Of a DNA stretch of 64,000 nt, positions 22,098-40,000 are shown piece by piece. The notes under the pieces were generated by a model. It was not told where the DNA came from. It saw only the letters and a program-made list of their open reading frames with translations, and made no database searches. Numbering within the stretch: position 1 is the stretch's first letter; each line of letters begins with the position of its first letter. The stretch comes from Blastocladiella emersonii ATCC 22665. Taxonomy: Eukaryota > Fungi > Blastocladiomycota. The stretch is from contig JANHCV010000002.1 of assembly GCA_025594325.1 (NCBI GenBank), positions 1,364,001 through 1,428,000 of the forward strand, given 5' to 3'. The position numbers were made by a program, and so were the translations under genes.

Positions 22098-25000
22098 TCA
22101 TGTACTGAGCGACAACACGCACGCGACGCCGCGGTTGACCCAGTGCTCCTCGGGGTGCCTGCTGGGCAGCCGCATGCTCATGACGTAGTTGGTCGAGTGA
22201 CCCGTCGTCGACAGCGTGCCGCGGCGCGCCAGCGTCTTGTACACGGGGCAGTCGTACGAGCTGTCGGTCTTGAACTTGGCCCGCTCGCCAGGCCGCAGCC
22301 AGATCACGGGCAGCGTGTCGTAGAGGACCTTGGGCAGGGCCTCGGCGAGCGCCTGCGACGGCGGGTCCCACCGTGCGCCCTCGACAAAGATGCCGTTCAC
22401 AAATACACCGTCCTCGGGCCGCACGCCCGCCGTCTGCCCGGCCTGCACCTGGTACTCGAGCGCGACCAGGTCGATCGGGATCGTGTACTTGCGCGCGAAG
22501 TTCTGCAGCACGCCCGTCAGGAACGACTGCGTGAAGAAGAAGCCCGAGATCCAGAACACGACGGGCGGGCCGACGTCGATCCAAGACTGGAAGAAGGCCA
22601 GGCGCGCGAGGAGGTCCGCAAAGTACCCACCGAGCGGCTTCATGCTCGGGTACGACTTGCCCGACCACATCTTCGGGATCTGCGCCGTCTGGATCGACTT
22701 GTTCAGGTCCTCGAGGTCCGCCGACATGACGACCAGGCCCTTGAGCGCCTTGAGCAGGTTCTTGAGCGAGTCCGACACCAGCACGTGCAGGTTGCGGAAC
22801 CGGATGCACTCCTGCAGCAGCACCGTGTTCATGCTCTCGTTGTAGCTGACCGGGTACTTTGCCTGGATCGCGCCCAGGTCAAAGAACGGCGGCAGCCGGT
22901 GCAGCATGTCCGTGGCCACATCGAACACGAGCGACTCGGCCGACGCGCCCCCACCCCCACCGCCCGACGTCTCCTGCGTCGAGATGATGGCCTTGAGCTG
23001 GTTCTCGGTCTCGAGCTGGTTCTTGGAGATGTCCGCGTTCTCGTGCAGCGAGAACACCTCGGGCTTGGTGTCAAGCGGCAGCTGACGGATGTACTCGAGC
23101 GCGTCCGCGTACTTGGCGTTGGGCGGGATCCGGTACACGCCCGACGGCGACAGCGCGAAGCTGTCCCTCTCCACCACGTTGCGGTTGTAGTACAGCGACA
23201 GCAGCGACAGCAGCGTGCGCCGGTCCTTGTCGTCGGTCACGCGCCCGCCGTAGTTGCAGTGGCCCGTCAGGTACACGAGCGCAGAGTACGGTACCTCGGC
23301 GTACTCGTTCAGGAAGTTGCGCAGCTGCCGCACTGAAATGCGCAGGTCCGTGTCGTTGAACTCGTACGGAATGTTCCAGCCTAACGGTGAAAAAGGTTAG
23401 TGAGCGTGATGGGATCAGTGATGGCGCGCGCGCCGGCGGCGTACCGATGGGACCGAACTGGCGGCGCTCCTGGACGACGGCGTGGAAAAAGCACAGCGCA
23501 AACAGCATGCGCTCGAAGGCGAGCTGGCGACTGCACCCCTCGTGGAACGTCTTGTCGCTGATCGGATCCGTGAGATAATTCTTCATGAGGTTGGCGCGCA
23601 GGCCCTTGGGCGGCTCGTTGGTCATCTTGACGCCGTTCTGCAGGATCGTCACGGGGAACTTCTCGGACGGGTACGACGTGAGCCAGATGCGGAAGTCGCG
23701 GTGCACCGTGTCGGGCGTCAGGTCCTCACAGATCTTCTCGAGCGCCGTCATCCACGACACGGCCAGGTGGCAGTTCTGCAGCACGATCCACGCGCCCTCG
23801 GCCGCGGCCTTGGAGATCATCTTGGCCGCGATCGGACCCTGGCCCTGCCCGAGCGAGATCGAGTTGACCTTGTTGCCCGGCATCTTGCGGTCGTCGGCGA
23901 ACTTAAGCAGCGACGTCATCGGGTCGGCGCCGGGCGACAGCACGAAGATGAGCGGCGTCGTCGAGCTCGAGTCCGAGAACGACGCGGGTAGGTCGAACGG
24001 CGGCGGCTCAATGAACCGCCGGCCCATGGTCTCGATGATGAACTGCTGCAGCGCGGGCACCAGCTTGTCGTAACGCAGGCACCGCAGTACGAGTAGGCGC
24101 TGGAAGACGGACAGCGTCGACTGCAGGCCGCCGGGTAGCGGGATCTCGTGCGGGCTCGCCGACTCGTACAGCTTGCGCATCTCGCCAACGTGCTCGATGA
24201 AGACGGTCAGCAGCTCGCCGAACGCCGGGAGCTTGGACAGCCGGCACAGGTCGGCCCACATCGACTCGGAGACCCACGACGGGTCCGGGTTGGCCGGCGA
24301 GCCGTCGATGGTGCCGAGGCCGCCGATCATGAGGAACTTCCACTCGTCGGCGTTGAGCTTGTTCTCGGCGCGCATGATCGAGGCGGTCAGCAGGATCGAG
24401 AAGACCAGCTTGTCCTTTTCGAACAGCGACCGGCACACGTTGAGGTACAGTGACTCGGTGAAGTGGCGGCGCAGGTTGGCCAGGCGCGTGTCGAGGACAT
24501 CCGACTTTTCCGACTTCTCGATGGACCCGATGAAGAGGTTGATGAACCACGGCAGCGAGTACTGGTACATGGGCTCGAGGTTGGCGAGCACCGCGATACA
24601 GAAGAAGAGCACCGACGAGTGCGCGGCGATCGGCTTGTACCCGGACCGCACCGTGTCGATCTGGATCTCCGTCTTCTCGGCCACGGCCTGCTTCTCCGAG
24701 ATGGTCTTGGACAGCACCTTGGACGACGCGAGGATCTGGATCGCCGTCTCGTCCTCGAGAATGTTACCGCTCGACGACGACAGCACCTCGAGGATCTTGT
24801 CCTCGATCTCCTGCAGCTGCTTCTTGTTTTCGGCCGACTGCAGCAGCAGCTGGTTCTTGGCCTCCTCGAGCTCGGGCTTCTCCTTGGCGATCACGATCCC
24901 GAGCAGCTGGTCCTCGAGACCCTCGGGCGTGATCATGAAGTTGAGCAGCGTCACCTTGGTCGACAGCTCGGGCAGATAGTGCGGGTTGCGCAGCTTGGTC

Positions 25001-28000
25001 GTCACGTAGAAGCGGAACTCGGACGAGTACTCGATGGTCGAGTCGCCGAGCCGGATGAACGTCATGCCGCCCTGCTTGAACGTCTGCTTGGCCAGCAGCG
25101 GCTCGAGGACCGGGTCGAGCTCCTCGCCCACGTTCTCGAGCAGCACCGGGTTGCCGAACTGGATCGCGTTCTCGAGCGTACGCAGGTAGTCCGAGTCGGT
25201 CAGCTTGATGAGCTGCAGCTGGTTGCTCTTCTCCATGTTCTTGATCCACCGGTTCGCCTGGCCCTGCGGGTCGATGAGCAGCGGCCACCGCCGCGAGTTG
25301 GACATGGTGATGGCGTTGTCGATCGAGAACGAGTCGTTGGGCAGCCCGGCCAGCGTCCACGACCGGATCTTGACGGGCTCGCCGAGCACGAGCGACAGCG
25401 ACACCGTGTCTGAGCACGGGATCTTGCGCTCGCGGCACTCCTTGACCCACGCGTTGATGCAGTCGTCGCGGTACAGCTTGGTGAAGGCGCCGAGGTACGC
25501 GACGATCCCGGCCGACACGAGCACGTCGCCCGTCAGCGCCGTGTACTTGATGCCGAGGTCGGCCGCGCACTTGGTCCACCGCTCCTGCTCGTCGCCGAGA
25601 CTCCCAATCAGCTTCTCGGCGCGCACGAGCTGCTTGGACACCGAGTCGACCTGGTTCTCGAGCGCCTCTTTCTTGGCCGTCATCTCCTTGAACTTGTTCT
25701 CGAGCGCCGTCATCTTGTCGACGACGGCCTTGAGCATGGCGCGCTTCTCCTCGAGACTCTTCATCGTCTCGTTGAGCTCCGACTCGGCCTTGCCGAGCGC
25801 CTCCTTCTTGGGCCCAATGACCTTGGCCACGCGGTCGTACATCTCCATAGCGCGCACCCACTTGCAGAGCCCCTCGGCGGCCGACGACGCCGACTTGACC
25901 TTCTCGGGATCGAACTCGGGGTTCTCCATGTACCTTGCGCGGATCACCTTCATGATGGCCACGGGGATGTTGTCGCGGTCGTAGGTGCGCAGCGAGTCGA
26001 GGAACTTGAGGTCGCCGAGCAGGGCCTTGGACGGGCCCCAGAAGTCCTCGACCTTCTTGCCCGTGGCCGGGTCGGGCACTTTGACGGGCTTGATGTCCTT
26101 CATGATGCACACGGCCTCCATGACCAGCTTGACGCCGGCGGGCGGGTTCTTCATCGACTTGATCAGGTCGATATCGTTCTTCTTGAGCGTGTCGAGCGCG
26201 GACATGGCGGCGTTGAGCGCGGGCAGCGCCTCGCTGAGGTCGGCCTCGCACTCGTCTTTGATCGCCTTGGCCTCGGCCGCTTTCTTGCTGGCCACGGCCT
26301 CGTCGGCCGCCACGACCTTGCGCGTCTCGTTCACCTCCTTGCTGTCGCGCTCGATCTGCACCATGATCTGCGCCGTCTCTTCCTGCGCCTTGATCAGCTC
26401 GGGCTGCAGTCCCTCGAGGTCGACCTGCATCTTGCTGACGGCCTTGCCGGCAAACTCGAGCTTCTCGAGCCCGTTGACGTAGCGGAACTTGAGCTTGGAC
26501 ACCTCGGCGCGCTTGAGCGAGAGCAGCGACTTGTACGCGCGGATCAGCTCGAGGTACGACGTCGGCGTCACGTAGTTGTGGCGGCGCAGGTTGTTGAGGA
26601 ACCGCGTCGACAGATCGCGCACGCCCATGTGGAACGACTTGCACGTCTGCACCACCTGCGCCCGCACGCCCTCCTCCATCTCCACGTCCGACAGGAACTT
26701 GGACGCCACCATCTCGAGCGCATCGTCCGGCCACGGCTGGTACCAGTCGATCGTGCAGCAGTTGATGATCTACAAGCGCGAGCGGAGGTTAGCGCATCGT
26801 GGATCCATGTCATGCGAGTGCGAGTGCGTACCGAGGGGAACTTGCGAAGTCGGACGCGGAACGCCTCGCCGACGGGACTCATACACAGGACGACGTGGAG
26901 CAGCTCGCGGCACCGCTCGATGAAGAAGGCGAACAGCGACGCCGTGTCCTCGGCGCCCTTGCGCTTCATGCCCTCGTTGCGCACGAGCTCAATGATCTCC
27001 GACCTTTCGTCCGGCGCGAAGATGTTGGGCACCTCGCCCGAGTTGAGCAAGTTGTTGATGTCCTCGAGGAAACTCTCCTGCTGGATCTGCGTGTCGCTGA
27101 ACAGAAACACGGTCGGCTTGCCCTCGCCGCCGGCCTTGCGCATGATCTTCTTGATGTCGTCGTGCCACTCGGTGGTTCCGTAGTTCTTGGTGATTTCGAC
27201 TAGATTGCGACGATTGTAGTCAGCGTCCCGATTCGAGAAGGCCGTGGCCATCGAGCGAGCGTACCCTGGAACAGCTCGTACTGGCCCATGAAGGCCGCGA
27301 GCCGCGTCAGCGACTGGCGGCCACTGCCGCCGACGCCGACACAAACCATGTTGCCCTGCGGCTGCAGCAGGACGCGCGAGATGCGGATCAGGTGCTCGAT
27401 GGCGAAGCGGAACATGACGAGGTCCATCTGCTTCTTGCTGAGCGCGTTGTACTCGGCGAGGTTCTTGTCGACGAGGTCCGTCATCCACTCGACGCTCTCG
27501 AGCTCGTCGTAGCTCTTCTTGGTGCCTTCGCCGAACGCGCCGAACATGAGGCTGCGGATGTCGCCCTCGGTGACCTTGCCGTCGTGGTCCGTGTCGTAGG
27601 CCTTGAGCGCCTGGTGGAAGCTGATCTGGAACGCCGACTGCGTCGTCTTGTCGATCATGCCGAAGAACCACTCGCGGTCCGAGTCGTCGACGAGCCGGTC
27701 GTAGAAGACGCGCATCACCTCGTGGATCCACAGCCGCACGATCTTGACCGAGTCCTGGTACCGGTCGGGCGCGCTGAGCAGGATGCCCTGCACGATGCGC
27801 GAGAAGTCGCGCAGGTTGAACGTGTAGTGCGACTTGGTCGGCGTCGGCAGCAGCGAGTCCATGGCGTTGCGGTACACCTGGCGCGTCGCCTCGACGATGG
27901 GCACGGCCAGGGCCTGCACGGCCTGCCCGAACCCCTTCTTGAAGTGCCAGTCGAGGATCACGCTGAAGATTTTGTTGAGCGTGATGTCGTCGAAGGCGTT

Positions 28001-31000
28001 GATCCCGACAAAGTTGAAGTGGCGGAGGAAGCGCGACGTGACCGGGTTGCGGCCGCCGCCGGGCGGGCCCATGGCCGCGACGAACTGGATGTCGACAAAC
28101 TCCTGGAACGCCTTGTCGCCGAGGTTGTACCAGCCGCCGTGGTCCATCCACTGGCGCAGCAGCTCGATGGGCGGCTGCGCGCCGTACACCTCGCGCGCGG
28201 GCATGTTCAGGTCGTCGACGAACACGATGGCGCGCTTGCCCATCATGGGCCCGTACACGCCCTTGCGGCGCTTGTCGAACTTGGACTCGAGGAACTCCTG
28301 CGTCTGGCGCGCCGACGTCTGCGCCGAGAACGTCAGGAAGATGTTGGTCCACTGGTCGCCCGGCAGCTTGTTGAGCGTGTCCATGATGTACATGGTCTTG
28401 CCCGTGCCCGTCGAGCCGATGAAGAGCACCTGCTTGTTGATCTTGGCGAGCAGCTTGAGCAGCCACGAGTACCGCATCGTGTCGATGGTCGGGACCAGGA
28501 TGTCGGCGAACCGCGCCGCGGCCGGGATCGGCGCGTCGCTGATCTGCTCGACCCACGGCTTCCACGACCCGTTGACGAGCGTGTAGTCGTAGACGCTGCC
28601 GTCGGTTGGGAACTGGCACTCGGTCACCGTCTTGCCGGTGAGCGAGCGCAGAAACACGTTGAACTTGGCGCGGCTCGCCTGGTTGAGCGCGCCGCCCACG
28701 CTCCACACGAGCGAGAACATCATGATGGCCTGCAGCGTGATATTCGTCGCCACCTTGTAGTCGAGCATGAGGCCTTGGAAGATGTTCATGCACGACCGCG
28801 CCAGGTTCGAGTCGAGCGTCTCGCACAGCTCAACGCACTCCTTGCGCACAAAGTCGAGGCTGCCATCCATCCACTCCTCGAACAGCGCCGCGATCGACGC
28901 CGACTGCTGCGGGTTCTTGTACTGCTCGTTGAGCCAGCTCTTCATGATCGGGCGCCAGCCGAGGCTGCGCGGCTCCATGTAGATCATGCCGCATCGAGAC
29001 ACGGTGGCGGGCTACAGTCACGGTTTCGCGTCAGTGGCGACTCGAGTCAGGCTGCGTGAGCGGGAAACGCACCGAGGCCACGGCCAGGTCTCGGACCTCG
29101 AACATCATACTCATGGTCGACGACAGCTGGATGATCTCGCCGCTGTTGAGGCACAGCTTCTTGTTGTCGTCGAGCACCGTGTTCATGTTCTCGATCCACA
29201 CGGCGTCGACGGGGCCGTCGAACAGCACCCACTTGCGGTCGGGCGACTGCGACGAGGCGAAGCCGCGGAAGCAGATGGCGAGCACGCCGTCCGACCACTC
29301 ATGCGTCGTCATGTCGAACTGGCCATACAGCTGGCCCATGGTGATCGACTTGGGGTTGAGCACCTGGTACTGGACGCGCTCGACGTTGGGGACGCCGAGC
29401 TTGGCCATCTCGGTCAGCGCGCCGGCGAGGACGCGGTAGCAACACGTCTTGCCCGACGTGGCCTCGCCAACCAGCATGAACCCGTGACGCACGAGCATCA
29501 TCTCGTACACCTGCAACACCTTCTCGAGGAACGTGTCCGTGAGCTGGAGGTTGAGGCGCTCGCACGACAGCTTGATGTTGGTGATGAGGATCTCGTAGTC
29601 GGGCGTCGGCAGCGTGCACCCGGGGAACAGATCCGAGATGATGCCCTTGAACAGCGGGATGTCGTGCGACAGGAACTTGGGCAGGTTGACGTCGTTGATG
29701 GAGCGCAGGATGAGAATGTTCTCGTTCTCCTGCGGGTACTTGAGCTTCCTGTAGTCGTGGCAGCGGATCAGCAACGACTTTCAAAGCAGAAACCAGGTTC
29801 AAGCACGTACAGAGCACCGGCAGCGTTGAGTACCGACTTGACGGCACGCATACCGTAATCGTAGTGATCCTGCGACGACAGCTGCTCGGAGCAGAGCCGG
29901 TACGTGGCCGTGATCTTGACGGCCATGCTGCGCGCGTCGACGAACCCGAACGAGTAGAGCGAGATCTCGGCGATGAGCGTGTAGTCGGGCACCATCATGG
30001 CCACGGGGCGGAACAGCGACTTGAGGTTGTCGGGCAGCTCGGAACGGCCAGCGTAGCCGGGGTTCATGGTGATGAACACGGCGCAGCCCGGGTTGAGGTT
30101 GAGCTCGGTGCCCTCGAAGATGAACGTCTCGGCGTTGGCGAACTTGGCGCGCTGGATCGTCAGGATCTGCTGCGCCACGACCGAGAGCACCTCGAGGTCG
30201 ATACGGTTGAACTCGTCGAAACACGCCCACGCGCCCGACGCGGCGAGGCCCTTGAAGAACTTGCCCATGGCAATGTAGTCGAGACCGTCCGAGCAGTTGT
30301 AGACGACGCAGCACTTGGCGATGGCCTTGGCGAGATCCTTGACGGACTCGGTCTTGCCCGTGCCAGCGGGACCCTCGGGCGCGCCACCGAGGTTGAGCTG
30401 GAGCGCGCCGAGGAGCGTGCGGAAGCACCGGTCGGTGAGCGGCGTGATGACGAGGCGCCCCGTGTTGCCGAGGTACTCGTAGCCATACTTGACGAGCGAG
30501 TTGATCATGCGCACATTGACGCCCTTCTGCGGCTCGTAGTAGTAGCGCATCTGCGACAGCCACTCAAAGTCGTTGATATCGACGACCTTGGCCTGCTCGA
30601 GCAGCGCGACCACGTCGCGCGCGTGCACGTCGACGACGACCAGCGCCTCGAGCGTCGAGCGGACCACGCGGGTCAGGCTGCCGCGGACGAGCTCGACGAT
30701 GCGCGAGAGCTGCTTGGACGCGGCCTCCGAGTAGGCGGCCAGCGCGTTCTCGGTGATGGCCTTCTCGACCTGGCGCGTCCAGAACACCTGCGACACGGTG
30801 AGCACGGCCTGGCCGGGCCACTGCAGCACCCACTTGTCGCGGTCGGCCTCGCGGTAGTTGGCGTAGGACTGCTCGACGACCTCGAAGACGCTGACGAACA
30901 TGCTGCGCTCGACGTCGAGCAGCCACTTCTCGACGGCGCCCGCGGCCTCGGCCGTCGAGATCTTCTTGGTGAACGGGATGAACTCCTTGAGCGCCGAGTA

Positions 31001-34000
31001 CATGCCGGCAATGTCGAGGTTGTCCTCGAACTGCAGCGAGTTGATGCCCTCGAAGCACTTTTTGAGGTGCGGCTGCACGCGCAGCGGGTCGCGCGTCTCG
31101 GACAGGATCTCGAGCATCTCGTCGTTGGACAGGAAGAAGAAGCGCGGGAAGTAGATGCGCTTGACCTCGAGGTAGTGGTTGAGCCCCTTCTGGATGAGCT
31201 CGAGCTCCTCGTTCGAGTGGTTGAGCTTGTCGAGCAGGCCGGGCATGGCCGTGGCGGCGAGGACGTGGTAGTCCTGCGCGAGGTACTTCATGAGCTCGCG
31301 CCAGAAGGCGTCGACGCCGCGGAACCGCTTGCCCTCGGTCGGCATCTGGCGCATGATGTCCTCGGAGCTGAAGATGGGCTCGAGGTACAGCCACGTCATC
31401 TGGACCTTGAGCCACACGTCGAGCACCTCCTGGATCAGGTTCAGCTTGGCGTCCCACGCCTTGCTCTCGTCCTCGAACGGCTTGATGTACGGGCTGCCGC
31501 GCATCGCCTGCGTCTTGACAATGTGGTCGTCGAGCAGCATCTGGATGTCGTCGATGGCCGACAGGATCTGCGTGCCCGTGTCGCGGTAGTCCATGGCCGT
31601 GAACACGATGTTCTCCCACTCGGTGTACATCTTCTGCAGCGCCTTCTCGAACGAGTACTCCTTGCTGGCCGTGGTCGAGATGGTCTCGAGCTGCTCCATG
31701 AAGTGGCCGAGGTTGCGCTCGAGCACGGACCCGAGCGTCGTGGTCTCGTCGGGCGAGAACTTGTACCCGACGACGCCAGAGATGGCCTGCCAGTGGCGGT
31801 CGCGCAGGCCCGGGTTGCACAGCACGCGGATCATCGGGATGTGCACCTTGAACTGCTCGAGCTCCTCCTTGATGCGCTGCGCCATGGCCGCGGGCTCGTG
31901 CGACTCGAACACGTTGAGGATCTTGTACACGTTGCGCCACATGGTCGTCACGTCGTTCTCGACCTTCTCGGCGTCGAGCTGCAGCAGCGACCCGTTGATC
32001 CAGGTGTTGCACGACCGCTGGAACTCGACGGCCGACGAGTAGAGCGTCATGTACGGCGCGAACTGCATGCTGACCTGCTCGAGCACCGGGAACGCCGTCG
32101 ACTGCCACCCGAACAGCATCTCGTCGCGGTTGAACGATGCCGTGCGCTCGGACAGCGAGTCGAGCTTGGCCTGGAACTTTTGCGCGACCTTGAGGTACTT
32201 CTGGATCTCGTCCACGTCGCCGTACTGCGAGAAGTCGACGAGCTGGCGCGACAGCGTCTCGAGCTCGGTCTGCAGCTTCTCGCGGCGCTGGTTGAGCTCC
32301 TCGTCGTTGGCGCGCCGCGACGCCGTGATGAGCTCCTCGCACGCCGTGAACGCCGGGTACATCTTACCCGGCCACGAGAAGAGCGTCGCGTTGAGGTCGT
32401 AGTCCTCGCGCTTCATGTCGTAGTAGGTGAACAGCACCGACAGCTGGCTGCGGCACTCCTCGACGACGCCCTCGAGCTTGGGCACCTCCTCGGACCGCAC
32501 CTTGTCGAGGTACTTTTGCAGGTTGGCCATCTCCTCGACCGACGTCGGGTGCCGGCTGAGGTTGTCCGAGATGTCGCTGTACTGCGCCGAGAGCCCCGCG
32601 TGGTGCGTGCGCATCTGCGCAGCGACCTTGTCCATGATGGCCGACGCGAGCGACACGGCCTTGTCGGCGAGGCTGGTCACGAACTCGTCGCACCGCAGCT
32701 CGACGAGCGGGAACGACACGACGAACGGGTACGCGGCGAGGAGCCCGTTGCTCGCGAGGTCGCGCAGCCGCTTAGCCTCCTCGACGAGCGTCTCGAAGGA
32801 GACCCCGCCCTCGTCGGCGGGACCCATGGGCTTGTCGACGAGCTCGCGAACGGCGCGCTCGAGGTCACCCGAGATGAGGTCCTTGTGGTTGTCGAAGACC
32901 GAGAGGTACTGCTGCGGCGTCGTGAGGAACTTGGTCGCGGCGCGCTGCAGCCGCTTGCGCTGGTACCCGACGATCTCCGGGTACGTGGCCTCGTGCGCGA
33001 CGGCGAGGTACTGCACGTTCTTGGTCGCGAACAGCTGGGTCTCGATGCGCGGCACCTTGTCGAACGCGAGCAGCAGCGTGTCGACAAGGCTCTCGAGCAT
33101 GGCCTGGATGTCGCGCGGCGGCGGCTCCATGCGGATCTCGCCCTTTTCCGTGTCGTGAACGAGCTTGATGCCGAACTGCGGCGGGCTAAGCCGCTTGATG
33201 AGCGTCACGTACGCCTCGAGCGCGTTGGCCGTGATCTGGCGGAGGAAGTTGGTCATGCAGATGGCGATCAGGTTGAAGAAGCTCGGCAGCTTGGGCGGCG
33301 GGACGGCCGACCACGAGTTCTTCTTGGCGCCCTGGTAGAAAACGTTGAGGATCTCGGGGTACCATCCGGTCATGAGCCGCTCGCGCGCGTGGTCGACCTG
33401 GTGCGCGACCGCGGCCTTGAACCGGCGGATCTCGAACGGCTGCTCCTCGAGCATGATGGCGGCGCTGCTGATCACGGTCAGGTTGGCGCACTTGGCGAAG
33501 ATGGCCTGGATCTCGAGCAGCACCGGGTTGACGAGCAGCAGGTTGTTGGCCACGTACTGCCGCGAGTACTTGAAGTCGGACTGCCACGTGGCCGTGGACG
33601 TGCGCAGCGACGTGAAGCTGAACTCGTCGTCCTCGTCCTCGGCGCCGGCGTTGGTCTTTTCCCGCGGGTCGCGCAGGACAAAGTCGACAATGGCCTTCTT
33701 GACGCTCATGTGGTAGTCCTCGCGCATCTCCGTCGACAGCGTCTCGACCGAGTCCGGGAACCGCTCCTTGAACTTGCCCGCGATGAGCCGCAGCACGTGG
33801 TCGAGCCACCGCCGGTCCATTTCGGCGACCTTGGTCGTGTCGACGCCCTTGGTGATGTAGTAGTAGTACCGTTGCTAGGCATGGGCGGGGCATTTAGTTG
33901 ATCGTAATCCGTGCACAGGTCGAGCGGGCGTACCATGGTCTCGCGCTCAGCCGCTGCTGCATCGTCAGCTGCCGCATCACCGCCGGGTTGCCTATTCACG

Positions 34001-34902: not shown

Positions 34903-37900
34903 CTACTGGTTCGGTGGGTCCTGCCCGTGCGGGTGCAGCGACGAGGCGCCCTGGCTCGACCCGGAACCCGTCCGCCCATCTGGACTCAGCATCTGGTTGG
35001 ACGCCATGGAGCTCGCCCTGGACACGTTCGAGTTGACCGAGGTCTGGCTACGCACCACTTCGCTCTGGCCGCGGTGGAGGATGGACGAGAGCGGCGCCAT
35101 GAGCCCGCTTCTTCCGCCGCTCATGAGGCTCGGCGTGAGTAGCGACGACTTCTTGCGGCTGTTGCGGATGTCGGCCGACAGCCGCTTGCTCGTTGCATCG
35201 GCCTCCTTGCGAGCCTTCTCCTCCTCCTCGGCCTTGCGCCGCGCGTCGCGCTCTTGCCGCTCGTTGATGACGGCGCGGAAAACCTCGCGCACCGTCGGGT
35301 ACTGCGACAAGATATCGTTGAAGTCGTCCTTCTTGAGCACGCACTGAGAAGGCACGAGCGAGTGAGCGATTAGTTTCCGGTGTAACAGGTAAGCTGAGGA
35401 GATGAAACGCACCAGCTCCGTGTCCATGGCGGTCCTCGCCGTCGCCGTGCGCCGAGACTCCTGGAACAGCGCAATCTCGCCGAAGAAGGCGCCCTGGTTG
35501 AGCGTCGTGAACACCTTGGACTCGTCCTTGGGCATGATGTCGACGCTGCCGGACCGGATAAAGTACATTTCCGTGCCCACGTCGCCGGCCTTGCAAATCT
35601 ACATGCGGCGACCGATAGTTAGCCCCGATGGCCTGCAAAGCGCCTCGTCAAGAGCAGGCGTACGTAGAAGCCCTTGCGGACGCTGATCATCGTGACCCGC
35701 TCGCACAGCGCGACCTTGAACACGTCGTCGGCGGTCTGGAAGATTGGCACCGACGAGATGAGCCTGTTCGAGGTGCGCGAAGTTAGTCACACAGCTCACG
35801 CGCGAGAGTGCGAAGTAATCGTACTCGTAGTAGAGGTGCACACAGACCTCGAGGTAGATGCTCTTGGGCAGCTGGTTGAATGCGTTCTCGGTGTCCATGC
35901 CGCGCTTGTGGATCCACTCGAACTCTACAACGCGGCGGCAGGATCAGAGGACCGATCACCGACGCACAGCTCAAGTGAGCAGCGCACCCTCCTGGTCGAG
36001 CACCTTCTTCTGCAGCTCCGTGGGGAACTCTTGCTTGATCATGTACTTGGACATGAAGTTGCGGCGCAGGTTGCGCAGTTTCGCTACACGGAAGAATTGT
36101 GGCGGAAGCAGTCAGTGGCCACGAAACGGCAGGAACCAGACACGCGAGGTGGATACGCACCAACTTTATCGAGCGCGGCCTGCGAGTCGAACGAGCGGAC
36201 GATTTGCGACAGGTTGCCGAGAATCGAGCCGTAGACGCAGGCGGCGAACATGGCTTCCTACTCTCGCGAAAGGACGGGTCAGGGACGGCATAGAGCACGG
36301 CTGACCGCCGAGCTCGACACGTACCACGATCTGGTACACGGCCTCAGCGAAACACAGCGTTTCTCGCGGGATGAAGAAGAGCGAGCGCTGCGTGACGAAG
36401 CTACGGACGCAAGCGCAGTGAGAACCCGCGACCGAGACGTTTCGGAGCGAGAGACGTACAAGTTATAGAAGTAGCGGTACGTGAGGGACGTCGGCATGCC
36501 CGTGTACTTTTCCTTGGCAATGTACCGCTCGTCCATCCACCGCGTGTGCTCCATGATGGTCGTGTTGACGAACCACCACCCGCACGAGTCGAGGTGCGTC
36601 ACGTACAGACTGAGGATCAGGTTCTTGCACAGGCGCGAGATGGGCGAGCTCATGCCGGGGAGGTGGACCTTGAGCGCCCACGAGATGGTGCCGACGGTGC
36701 CGATCAGGCGGATGAAGCGGAGGACCGAGTACGCGATGAGCTCGTCGGAAATCTCGCTACACACACGCGCGCGGCGAGTCAGCATGCGGTGCCGGATGCG
36801 GCGGCCGACGTACGTACTTCATGTGGTACGAGTAGCGCAAGCTGACAAACTGCAGCCCGGCGACCGGCTTCTTGGAGAAGGTGCCGTCCGAGTAGACGTA
36901 GTACGGGTTGTAGCACTTGAGCGTGTCGGCGAGCGGGCCCTGCGAGCGCGCCAGGAAGATGATGATCCAGTCGAGCGGAATCGCACCAATGACCTCGGCC
37001 CAGCCGTGCATGTTGTTGAAGTAGAAGCGGCGCTTCTCGATGGTCGAGAGCACCAGCTGGCCGTACTTGTCGATCTTGGGCCGGATCAGGTTGGCCGCGA
37101 TGCGCATGAAGTACAGCACGTCGAACAGGAAGAAGTGCAGGACAAAGTCGCTGCCGAACTCGCACATGAACGCAAACGCGACGGGGATGATGATGAGGTA
37201 GTCTACATGAGCGACGCGTGTCAGTCAGCAATCGAGACGGCGAGTCGATGACCGCGAACGCGTACAGATGTCGACGAGCCACATGATCCGGTCCCACATC
37301 CGCCACTCGAACGCGTCGGGCTCGAGCAGGAGGTGCCGCGTGTAGTTGAAGATGCGCTCGCGGATCGGACCGGTCAGTCGCTGGAGGAAGCTCGGTGCAG
37401 GCGTTGCTGGGTCGTAGTTTTGGTCGACGAGATTGTCCGTCTCCTGGTCCACGCCGCCCGTCGGCGACGTGGCGTTCTCGTTGGCCGCGGGCGCGGATCC
37501 GGTGCTCGGCGAGCGCGTCATGCCGGCGGCCGGCGGCGGCTGCTGTTGCTGCTGTTGTTGTGGTGGCGGTGCCTGCTGATGCTGAGGGTGTGCCGCTGGA
37601 TGCGGCGCCGACTGGGCCGAGCTCGGTGTCGAGGCCCCACCCGGCCCAGCCGACGCACCGGCAGTTCCATGGCCCGCCGACGCGTTGGTCGAGACCGAGC
37701 GCACGTCGCCCGCGCTTTTCTCGTGGGTGCCGCTCGACGTGACCGAGCCGGCGTCGTCGCGGAACGAAGCGAGGTCGGCCGAGAAGGTCTCGCGGAGCGC
37801 GCTCGGGCCGTGCATTAATGGCGGGTGGTGCGGCGCGCTCGTGCCACCACCACCGGCGCCGGCACCGGGACCTCCGTGACCCCCACCGCCGACCGACGCC

Positions 37901-38985
37901 GAGGAGCCGTGCGCCGAAGCAGGGCCCGAGGTGCGGGCGATGTGCGGTGGGACCGCCGCGGACCCGCGCGTGAGTGTGTGGTGGACGGTTCGGCGGCCCA
38001 CCTCGATGCTCGCGTTCGAGTGCTTGAGCGAGTTGGCGCCGCCGGCCTCGCTGTTACTGCGGCGGGTGCGGCCCTTCTCGAGGTCGAGACTGCCCGTCGC
38101 CTCGGGCTCGCGGCGGTGGACGACGATCGGCTCGGGCGGCTCCGGTTCCGGCTCGGGCTCGTCGAGGGCGTCGATGGCCGCGGTCTCGGGCTCGTTGAGG
38201 CGCATCATGGAGCGAGCGGCGACGGCCTTGATGGCGAGGGCGACGTTGGCGGGCAGCGAGCCGACGGGCGGCGTCGCACTCACGTTGTGGCTGGACACCG
38301 GGACGCTGCCCCGCTTGGGCGGCGCGACCGAGTGCTGCGCGAGCTGCGAGACGATGCGCTCGTGGTTGCGCGACAGCGTCGACGTGGCTGCGGCGCCCGG
38401 CGGGCTCAGGATGGTGACGCTGCCGGCGAGCGAGCCCGGCGCGGTGCCGCTCGACCGGCTCTCCATGGCCTGCGAGGACGGTGGGCCCTGGCTGTTGGCG
38501 ACGCGCCAGCCGACCATGTCGCTGAGCGAGCCGAGCGACGAGTTGGGCGTGTCGTCGTCTTCGCTGTCCGAGTTGGTGAAGTGCATGCGTGTTGGACCGA
38601 CGTTGGCCGAGCCGACGGCCGAGCCGATCGCGGAGCCGCCGTTGACGGGCGACGGCGACGGGGCGCGCGAGCCCATGGCGGGAGAGTGCGTGTGGTTGAG
38701 CGAGGCGGCCGTGGCGAACACGTCGTTGTCCTCGCCCGTCTTGGGCATGAGAATCTGCGCCGTGGACGAGGCGGACGACGCCGACTCCTCCTCGTCGAGC
38801 GCGGACATGGACATGAGGCTTTCGGGGCGGCTGCTCGAGGTCATGGTGATCTTGGGGATGGCGAGGCCGAAGTCGCGCGAGTTGCGCGAGCTGTCGTTCT
38901 CCTCGCCGTCGTCGCCGACCGTGATGAGCGGCGGCTGCCGCGGCGGATCGGGCATCGACCACGCGGACGAGCTCTTATGCGCCAT
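34903..38985 (-). CDS. 6-TM cyclic-nucleotide-binding channel-like protein (CNG/HCN superfamily) with a non-canonical pore loop
   Basis: Nine GT-AG introns. Long disordered N-terminus, S1-S6 (WDRIMWLVDI; FDVLYFMRIAANL; EVIGAIPLDW; LRFIRL; HLDSCGWW; YGSILGNLSQIV), C-linker (QLPKSIYLEV), and CNBD (ICKAGDVGTEMYFIRSG...FFGEIALFQESRRTATA...YPTVREVF). Confidence 0.92.
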
Positions 38986-39066
38986 GGTGGGCAGCACGTC
39001 GTCGTCGTCGGAGGGTTACGCGCGTCAAAGCGGGCTACACGCGTGCGCGCCGCGAGTTAGCCGGGC

Positions 39067-39140
39067 GGGGGGGGGGGGGAGGGGGGGGAGGGGGGGGAGG
39101 GGGGGGAGGGGGGGGAGGGGGGGGAGGGGGGGGAGGGGGG
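39067..39140 (+). repeat. G-run tandem repeat G13-A-(G8A)x6-G6 with G-quadruplex potential
   Basis: Directly visible 9-bp period, 82-155 nt upstream of the channel ATG. The G-rich strand is the template strand. Confidence 0.95.
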
Positions 39141-40000
39141 TGGACTCCATCTCCATCAAGGATTGCCATCCGCGCGCGTTGACATACGAGAGAGAGAGGT
39201 GGGGAGCGATCAGTCTCGTCCGGGAATACCGAGCGGCATCTATATCCGGTGCCGAGGGGAGGAGCGAGGACGGATCCGCCTGCGGGCGCGATTTGCTAGT
39301 CACTCGCTGTGTACCTCGCGCGCTCTCGCACAGCTCTTCTACGAGTAGGGCGACGCGTGTGGAACTGAGCGGCTGGGACACACGGCGCGCGGTTCTAGAA
39401 GACGGCCTCCGTCGTACCAGGTGCGACCAAGACGCGGGGACGGTGGCGGTTGCGCGCGAGACAGGGGCAGGTGACCCTTGCACAATGACAAATGTCGTGT
39501 CGTTACATTGAGTGCGGGCGGGCGAAACAGAAGCTCTCCCGGCGGCCGCCGTGTCTCGCACGCGACGCGTCGCCTTGGCGCGGGTGGCGCTGCGCGACGC
39601 GTCTCGCGGCACGTGCCGTCTCCGAACGCCCGAAACACACACCCGCTGCACGCATCGACGGAAGGCCCGCACCGCTCATCCGTCTGCCGATGCTCGCCTC
39701 AGGACGCAAACTTGTCCCACTCGAGCTGTTGAGGCGGAGGCGGAGGAGGGGAGACGGCGGCCTGCCTACCCGATCCCAGCCTGGTGGAGCATGCCATCGT
39801 CGAAGATTTAGTGGCACTGGCTTCCGAATCATCTCAGATATAGTATGAAGTGATCGTGAGCAGCAGACCGCCAAGACCGCCACGTAGAAGGCTCGAAGGC
39901 TGGGGCCTGCCGGCGACGCGCCTTCGCGAGCGGGCTTCTCTCCGAGTCGCCTCCGGCACTGCGCGCTGGACTCGCATTCCGCGCTGATACACTTGTCGCA

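Follow-up and report, generated by a model that had tools for sequence, protein, structure and literature searches.

A glycine-based selectivity filter is the most conserved feature of K+ channels and of channels with a cyclic-nucleotide-binding domain (CNBD). What, then, is the product of a gene in the zoosporic fungus Blastocladiella emersonii ATCC 22665 whose filter position reads S-L-F-F-I-P-R-E, with no glycine at all? The gene lies on the minus strand of the 64,000-nucleotide stretch analysed here (the window; G000:C11:1364001-1428000, in an assembly of 32.65 Mb and 21 contigs), and the loop is encoded by its fourth exon, 76 nt long. We are confident that this exon is the P-loop of H9P43_002412, a member of an undescribed CNBD-channel clade confined to zoosporic fungi. 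The clade keeps a voltage-sensor-like S1-S4 domain, S5, the pore helix, an S6 with an HCN-like gate stretch, the C-linker and an apparently ligand-competent CNBD, with the glycine filter swapped for a conserved hydrophobic-[F/Y]-F-x-x-R-[D/E] loop (here L-F-F-I-P-R-E). B. emersonii serves as the model of phototaxis through a rhodopsin-guanylyl cyclase and has supplied optogenetic tools, and the finding departs, in a constrained manner, from the superfamily's most conserved rule in an organism already used for cGMP optogenetics.

The gene model and its fourth exon

A script that anchored each donor and acceptor produced a reading frame from the ATG at 38985 to the stop at 34903, comprising 3498 nt and 1165 codons with zero internal stops. 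All nine introns are GT..AG and 59-77 nt long, with CTAAC-like branch sites in several. The spliced model is identical, residue for residue, to the database protein P0042 ('hypothetical protein H9P43_002412 [Blastocladiella emersonii ATCC 22665]'), which served as its stand-in for searches and structure prediction. The gene and its first four exons are:

34903..38985, minus strand: whole gene, 10 exons, 1165 amino acids (splice model, and identity to P0042, GenBank H9P43_002412)
37266..38985, minus strand: exon 1, 573 codons, low-complexity N-terminal region into the start of S1 (splice model)
36818..37202, minus strand: exon 2, S1-S3 followed by an extracellular beta-hairpin insert between S3 and S4 that bears a Cys and an NPxYxY motif (splice model, family alignment, AlphaFold2)
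36460..36756, minus strand: exon 3, S4, S4-S5 linker, S5, turret and start of the pore helix (splice model; query of the exhaustive HMMER search)
36325..36400, minus strand: exon 4, 76 nt, residues 801-826, end of the pore helix, filter-equivalent loop and start of S6 (boundaries TAG/ and /GTACGT)

On the minus strand the order is ...TACCGCTACTTCTATAACTT/GTACGTC...CGTCCGTAG/CTTCGTCACGCAGCGCTCGCTCTTCTTCATCCCGCGAGAAACG...CAGATCGTG/GTACGTG, that is, the end of exon 3, intron 3, exon 4 and the donor of intron 4, with slashes at the boundaries. The exon 4 peptide runs from F801 (split codon tt/c) to V826, FVTQRSLFFIPRETLCFAEAVYQIV, and the reading across exons 3, 4 and 5 is YRYFYNF/FVTQRSLFFIPRETLCFAEAVYQIV/EAMFAACVYGSILGN. 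An original prediction made from the window alone had described a 76-nt exon with canonical splice sites on both sides, in a gene intact over nine introns and with a filter devoid of glycine; the GT..AG model, its identity to the GenBank protein and the 1165-residue frame without an internal stop bear this out.

The loop might nevertheless be an artefact, produced by a mis-predicted exon, by an alternative canonical pore exon that had been overlooked or by the decay of a pseudogene. A search for RNA sequencing runs listed none, and the main text of the genome paper does not mention RNA-seq support (PMC9730499). Against this explanation, the model is identical to an independent GenBank annotation and is collinear with orthologues of three other genera, both exon 4 junctions being shared with separately annotated orthologues from Allomyces macrogynus, A. 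arbusculus, A. javanicus and Catenaria anguillulae. A paralogue in the same genome (L004) carries S5, the same kind of loop and S6 on a single frame uninterrupted by introns. Introns 3 (36401-36459, 59 nt) and 4 (67 nt) are so short that they leave no room for a hidden exon, and a scan of all frames in the transmembrane part of the gene span found no GYG-, GFG- or TIGE-like coding stretch. The exon 4 reading is secure because of the collinear orthologues, the uninterrupted paralogue, the short introns and the lack of any such string. An alternative exon with a GYG or TIG filter, the outcome that the original prediction had singled out for checking, was thereby ruled out. A pseudogene was ruled out by the intact frame of 3.5 kb, the GenBank-identical model and conservation among relatives, the loop motif being kept across two phyla. 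We regard artefact or decay as largely refuted and barely credible.

Kinship with channels that carry a cyclic-nucleotide-binding domain

The protein is laid out as a disordered N-terminus of ~565 residues, S1-S6, a C-linker, a CNBD and a charged tail. The N-terminal 565 residues are of low complexity, with a poly-Gln/Pro stretch, and exon 1 had no Pfam match. AlphaFold2 modelled P0042:565-862 with a pLDDT of 94.3 and a pTM of 0.87, and the Allomyces orthologue P0001 with a pLDDT of 91.8. The channel parts were assigned as follows:

Residues ~566-667: S1 to S3 (AlphaFold2 model of P0042:565-862)
36669..36746, minus strand: S4 and S4-S5 linker, residues 706-731, DELIAYSVLRFIRLIGTVGTISWALK (translation, AlphaFold2 helix, family alignment)
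Residues 739-768: S5 (AlphaFold2 model)
36382..36485, minus strand: pore helix L793-S807, LTYRYFYN/FFVTQRS (LTYRYFYNFFVTQRS), interrupted by intron 3 (AlphaFold2 helix 229-243 of P0042:565-862)
36352..36381, minus strand: filter-equivalent loop L808-C817, LFFIPRETLC (translation; AlphaFold2 coil between two helices, pLDDT ~93)
36076..36351, minus strand: S6, residues 818-861, exons 4, 5 and 6 (AlphaFold2 model and alignment)
35825..36083, minus strand: C-linker, exons 6-7, AKLRNLRRNFMSKYM...HLYYE (aligned via the orthologue P0003 to SthK, TAX-4, CNGA1 and HCN1)
35299..35684, minus strand: CNBD, residues 951-1034, exons 8-10 (Pfam PF00027, 2e-21 for P0042 and 3.8e-16 for exon 9 alone)
35434..35484, minus strand: phosphate-binding cassette FGEIALFQESRRTATAR with the canonical G-E...R-T-A residues (translation)

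S6 bears the invariant residues E820, E827 and G836 and a YGSILGN motif, with L839 and S843 at the predicted bundle crossing. In the phosphate-binding cassette F, G, E, R and A are invariant in a 19-member family alignment, and judged from these intact residues the CNBD appears to be ligand-competent. S4 contains two arginines only (R715 and R718), and Gly occupies the two places after them in the every-third-residue series. This R-x-x-R-x-x-G-x-x-G pattern characterises the orthologue group of the window gene; in other paralogues the third and fourth positions are Arg, Lys, His or Gln, in contrast to the conserved pore loop. The S3-S4 insert (residues ~668-705, exon 2) of the Blastocladiomycota members is predicted with high confidence to form a small beta-sheet and carries a nearly invariant Cys and the NPxYxY motif, and chytrid members are without it.

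When the exons were searched one by one against Pfam and Protein Data Bank (PDB) sequences, only exon 9, which encodes the CNBD, gave a match (cNMP_binding, 3.8e-16), and the transmembrane exons returned nothing or chance matches. cNMP_binding was also the sole Pfam match of full-length P0042 (2e-21), and neither Ion_trans (PF00520) nor Ion_trans_2 (PF07885) matched P0042, P0001, P0003, P0005, P0007 or P0018 at E <= 1. The missing channel match explains the 'hypothetical' annotation; family members that the Pfam channel models miss are invisible to domain-based channel surveys.

Profiles and predicted folds were more informative. A profile of S1-S6 from 20 family members matched HCN4, HCN1 and HCN3 across S1-S6 (E 7.6e-12 to 4e-11), the HCN4 match (7.6e-12) covering profile positions 4-284, and the next matches were hERG, CNGA1-3, TAX-4, Eag1, GORK and SKOR. 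The Catenaria orthologue P0003, which shares 54% identity with the window protein over 485 residues, matched at full length SthK (1.5e-36), TAX-4 (4.6e-26), CNGA1/A3 (~1e-23) and HCN1 (~2e-21), its alignment with HCN1 beginning in S4. A Foldseek search of the PDB with the P0001 model placed only CNBD-family channels at the top, with TMq values of 0.55-0.69 (HCN1, HCN4, TAX-4, SKOR, CNGA1, hERG, Eag1, GORK and AKT1; for HCN1, E 1.6e-7 and TMq 0.65), and ESM Atlas features gave generic Ion_trans clusters only. By profile and predicted fold, the six-transmembrane core, the C-linker and CNBD after S6 and the binding-cassette residues place the protein clearly in the CNBD-channel superfamily, in agreement with the CNG/HCN kinship claimed originally.

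The best profile and fold match over the whole of S1-S6 was to the HCN channels (HCN1-4), which share the non-swapped CNBD-channel layout followed by C-linker and CNBD. The alignment with HCN4 shows common S5 H-x-D-x-C, S3 IPxD and S6-end Y...G...SLD signatures and sets the invariant Arg of the family opposite the Arg that follows GYG. Unlike HCN channels, the window protein has no CIGYG, possesses the S3-S4 beta-hairpin insert and has two S4 arginines instead of a long regular basic series; identity is 16-18%, and Pfam Ion_trans does not match. The C-linker and CNBD bear a strong similarity to those of CNGA/CNGB and Caenorhabditis elegans TAX-4 (E 1e-23 to 5e-26), and the S6 pattern E-x6-[E/D]-x-L...G-N is one that we take to resemble CNGA, but the T-I-G-E-T-P filter of these channels, with its glutamate ring, is absent. 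The full-length search with P0003 had SthK as its strongest sequence match (1.5e-36, S6 to CNBD), and the pore module of SKOR aligned ungapped, whereas SthK, SKOR, GORK and AKT1 all have T-[TV]-G-Y-G-D where the window protein has S-L-F-F-I-P.

None of the glycine-containing filters of the superfamily (T-x-G-Y/F-G, C-I-G-Y-G or T-I-G-E) is found in the window protein. An ungapped phmmer alignment with SKOR from S5 to S6 placed S807-L-F-F-I-P812 opposite T-V-G-Y-G-D. The family profile placed F809-F810-I811 opposite L-C-I of HCN4, with a 2-residue gap opposite G-Y, and paired P812 with G and R813 with R of GYGRQ. In the phmmer alignment of P0003 with SthK the second Phe stood opposite D of GYGD, and a 2-residue insertion followed later. 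In none of the three alignments is a glycine available for the filter. The original prediction had spoken of a 'collapsed' filter in which Gly was replaced by Pro, a basic residue was added and about 2 residues were lost. These details hold in the HCN4 alignment but not in the ungapped SKOR alignment, and the AlphaFold2 coil between pore helix and S6 is of ordinary length, at 10-11 residues. The lack of glycine stands, but because the apparent shortening depends on the alignment used, 'collapsed' is too strong and 'replaced' is the safer word.

A conserved loop in zoosporic fungi

Is the glycine-free loop a peculiarity of one gene? With the window gene counted in, the B. emersonii genome holds five family genes with such a loop:

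C11:1.40 Mb, window gene: loop TQRSLFFIPRE
C11:0.297 Mb, paralogue P0004 (L002): loop AQKALFFLLRE
C1:0.569 Mb, paralogue P0007 (L003): loop AQKALYFMPRE
C1:4.997 Mb, paralogue L004: loop AQQVMFFAFRD
C11:2.628 Mb, paralogue L009: loop ALQSIVYVFRD

Two of the ATCC 22665 paralogues are likewise present as GenBank proteins. L009 (G000:C11:2625500-2630000; match C11:2627251-2628630, minus strand) was detected by the family profile and not by a single-exon query, and in its loop, ALQSIVYVFRDIN, Tyr-Val replaces Phe-Phe and Arg-Asp is retained.

Exon 3 (S4 to pore helix) was used as the query against 1.84 billion cluster representatives in an exhaustive HMMER search, which returned 35 proteins in total at E <= 1e-3. 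The search reached this clade only, the HCN and CNG channels themselves not being matched. A glycine-free loop with Arg was found in every inspected protein among the 35, the consensus being [AS][QE][KR][AS][LM][FY]F..R[DE] with the Arg invariant; a distant subgroup has S-L-V-L-K-[LI]-R. All matches with a source name came from zoosporic fungi, and two further ones are known from read assemblies only. The Blastocladiomycota were represented by Blastocladiella emersonii, B. britannica, three Allomyces species, Catenaria and Sorochytrium, and the Chytridiomycota in the broad sense by Polychytrium, Gaertneriomyces, Gonapodya, Synchytrium, Phlyctochytrium, Nowakowskiella and Irineochytrium. A word-index protein search with the transmembrane region of an orthologue found 7 proteins only; since its sensitivity is limited, the taxonomic claim rests on the exhaustive search.

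Several public names in the family are misleading (P0023, P0029, P0033 and P0039). Among them are 'Kinesin-like protein kif27' (A. javanicus), 'Cyclic nucleotide-gated olfactory channel' (Nowakowskiella, Irineochytrium) and a Synchytrium gene model that looks like a fusion with an SRP-receptor beta subunit.

In a 19-sequence alignment R813, E820, E827, G836 and D850 (window numbering) were invariant, and F809 and F810 were each conserved to at least 90%. Conservation by segment, taken as the mean frequency of the commonest residue, was:

Membrane segments: S1 0.48, S2 0.37, S3 0.37, S4 0.43, S5 0.55, pore helix 0.46, loop 0.56, S6 0.60
Cytoplasmic segments: C-linker 0.57, CNBD 0.62

S5, the loop and S6 (0.55-0.60) are thus more conserved than S1-S4 (0.37-0.48). 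Pairs of Allomyces orthologues are ~99% identical. A quick maximum-likelihood tree placed the window gene, Catenaria P0003 and four Allomyces proteins in one group (SH-aLRT 100), nested within a Blastocladiomycota radiation (SH-aLRT 100) outside which the chytrid sequences and L004 fell. The tree was midpoint-rooted with its basal order unresolved, omitted L009 and fragments of less than ~300 residues, and had as its only outgroup the conventional GYGD channel gene of B. emersonii, separated from the family by a branch longer than 4 substitutions per site. Since five genes of one genome and relatives from two phyla carry the glycine-free loop, the loop is by sequence comparison a conserved family trait and the gene is not decaying; the homologues in Blastocladiomycota and Chytridiomycota also settle in the negative the question of lineage-specific decay that the original prediction had raised. 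A whole clade, with at least five genes per Blastocladiella genome and members in two phyla, has exchanged its filter for a different, equally conserved motif. The glycine-free family is described in none of the papers searched, among them PMC7576140, which surveys CNBD channels across eukaryotes, and PMC9730499, the genome paper.

The family is also distinct from BeCNG1, the GYGD channel proposed as the K+-selective effector of rhodopsin-guanylyl cyclase (PMC4046227), the distribution of which is given in PMC9616733. A CNBD-channel gene at G000:C19:~283 kb (L005) reads ...ITLTTDRVGYGDVH..., contains RVGYGD and matches Ion_trans_2. Judged by sequence it is this gene, not the window gene, that fits BeCNG1, and the GYGD signature of the K+-selective CNG channels of the CNGK/BeCNG1 type, present there, is absent from the window protein; the proposed separation from the GYG-type channel therefore holds. 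The two share organism, superfamily and a cGMP/cAMP-binding domain and plausibly serve the same zoospore cyclic-nucleotide signalling, but BeCNG1 has GYGD, is thought to be K+-selective, is encoded by a separate gene with an Ion_trans_2 match and stands on a very long branch from the family. BeCNG1 is the only cGMP effector channel considered so far, and the family genes are candidates for further cGMP or cAMP effectors in zoospore swimming, encystment and germination.

Possible functions of the replaced filter

Prediction of four copies of residues 735-862 gave ipSAE values of 0.37, 0.40 and 0.36 against 0.00, 0.00 and 0.02 for controls, with contact agreement of at least 83% and partner pLDDT of at least 62. 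In the calibration 21 of 30 solved homo-pairs and 0 of 23 single chains attained this ipSAE mark, and the tool warns that a pass may be memory of solved channels. In the predicted interface, to which the same warning applies, the pore helix (795-806) packs against the S6 of the neighbour (818-833) in the classical arrangement. The interface also takes in loop residues 809-812 and S6 contacts between subunits (839-839, 839-843 and 843-843).

In the mechanism that we propose, four subunits would surround a central axis as in HCN and CNG channels, and cAMP or cGMP on the CNBD would act through the C-linker on the S6 bundle crossing (Y835, L839, S843 and R847). In the HCN1 alignment these positions fall on Y386, V390, T394 and Q398, which we take to be the HCN1 inner gate. 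Since Phe and Pro stand where the glycines would be, the outer pore could not build the cage of backbone carbonyls that selects K+, an argument that follows from the established structural chemistry of K+ channels. Any conduction would then have to pass through a side-chain-lined throat framed by aromatic rings and by a ring of four invariant arginines. Such a throat would not be K+-selective, being either weakly selective or anion-favouring.

Given a conserved loop and the retention of gate, C-linker and cyclic-nucleotide site, the loop probably has a specific role other than K+ selection. Tentatively, and at somewhat less than an even chance, we favour a working central pore, in which a cyclic-nucleotide-gated tetramer would conduct along a side-chain-lined path that is not K+-selective. 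We do so because constraint within the membrane domain is strongest in the pore module, because the apparatus of CNBD and C-linker that drives the S6 gate is retained in full, and because HCNL1, the one relative with a proven plugged pore, shows drift of the filter string and loss of cyclic-nucleotide gating (PMC7306766). If conducting, the protein could become a new cyclic-nucleotide-gated tool with unusual selectivity.

Several considerations weigh against a working central pore. We know of no tetrameric P-loop channel with such a loop that conducts. The register of the loop against canonical filters shifts by up to 3 residues between alignments, and the invariant Arg, aligned with the post-GYG Arg of HCN4, may be an inherited HCN-like feature rather than a determinant of anion selectivity. 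The function proposed derives from sequence and predicted structures alone, and the bulky hydrophobic L-F-F-I-P, with inter-subunit contacts at 809-812 in the model, would fit a hydrophobic plug equally well. Moreover, altering GYG abolishes conduction in HCN and Kv channels (PMC7306766).

A Phe-Phe loop that sealed the axis would leave the protein with a plugged central pore, as in HCNL1, and it might then act through a proton or cation leak across the voltage sensor, or purely as a membrane sensor of cyclic nucleotides or voltage or as a scaffold. To our knowledge HCNL1 and HCNL2 are the only CNBD relatives that have lost the filter, and their permeation path is a different one. Besides the bulk and hydrophobicity of the loop and the contacts that 809-812 make between subunits in the predicted tetramer, the S4 of the window's orthologue group (two Arg, then small residues, R-x-x-R-x-x-G-x-x-G) speaks for this explanation, as does His at these positions in some paralogues. 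Small residues at S4 charge positions can open gating-pore leaks. The precedent is the HCNL1 pore domain, which is non-conducting while protons cross the voltage-sensor domain (PMC7306766). HCNL1 and HCNL2, from fish sperm, have WPFLE or WISTK in place of CIGYG, and their hallmarks are a non-conserved pore string, a Met that interrupts the conserved S4 Arg series and the lack of cyclic-nucleotide gating (PMC7306766).

The analogy with HCNL1 drawn in the original prediction has some ground, since HCNL1 and HCNL2 belong to the CNBD family, come from a swimming cell and lack the canonical filter; it is weaker than implied in that the window family has a loop conserved across phyla, a short and variable S4 and an intact cyclic-nucleotide cassette. 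In the window family the loop and S6 are more conserved than S1-S4, and S4 past its first two Arg varies freely among paralogues, whereas HCNL1 shows the reverse, with S4 conserved and the filter string not (PMC7306766). The CNBD and the C-linker acting on the S6 gate are fully conserved, whereas cyclic nucleotides do not gate HCNL1, and a structural plug has no obvious need of an invariant Arg and two invariant S6 glutamates. On balance we consider a plugged pore unlikely, although a serious contender.

A more specific form of a conducting pore would be a cyclic-nucleotide-gated anion or otherwise non-cation channel on the tetrameric P-loop scaffold, the aromatic pair lining the throat and the Arg ring providing positive potential. 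The edges of the two aromatic rings would stabilise anions, in a manner that we presume to be akin to the bestrophin neck or the Phe box of Fluc. We think this distinctly improbable; if true, the voltage-gated-like P-loop superfamily would gain its first anion-selective member, and the fungal zoospore a new cGMP/cAMP effector.

The window protein could instead be a silent or modulatory subunit that forms mixed complexes with a CNBD channel able to conduct (one of the four conventional genes, BeCNG1 among them) and changes its conductance or gating, as CNGB does. The genome does contain conventional CNBD channels, namely the GYGD gene L005 and three more loci (L006-L008, of which L007 lies at C18:1.891 Mb and the others at C11:1.733 Mb and C11:1.739 Mb), and it is well established that CNG channels can be heteromers with divergent B subunits (7rh9 and 8ev8 are among the P0003 matches). 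However, the transmembrane family profile matched the conventional genes at E 2e-6 or weaker, compared with 1e-25 to 1e-62 within the family, and the GYGD gene stands more than 4 substitutions per site away in the tree. The presence of five or more paralogues per genome, all with the same loop, suggests assembly among themselves, and the homotetramer prediction scored above its controls, subject to the tool's warning of memory of solved relatives. A Gonapodya species also has a family member (P0035), and BeCNG1 went undetected in Gonapodya prolifera (PMC9616733), a weak point as the strains differ. A modulatory subunit thus seems very unlikely to us.

One of the conventional loci, L007 (G000:C18:1890000-1894000), reads ...YIYSAYWV..., then a likely intron, then ...VVVTVPGFADLEAPT... 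(locus positions ~1880-2000) where a T-V-G-F-G-D filter is expected, which may represent another type of non-canonical filter, or else a problem with the splice site. Downstream of the window gene, on the same strand, the dynein heavy chain gene named in the original prediction is real: open frames at 23071-33820 match DHC_N2, AAA_6, AAA_8, AAA_9, MT and Dynein_heavy. In this eukaryote such adjacency is no evidence for shared function, and the zoospore role, the flagellar link and the inner-arm type of the dynein are conjectural. Upstream of the ATG, at ~39030-39160, lies a simple-repeat tract with long poly-Pro or SPP runs in the minus-strand frames.

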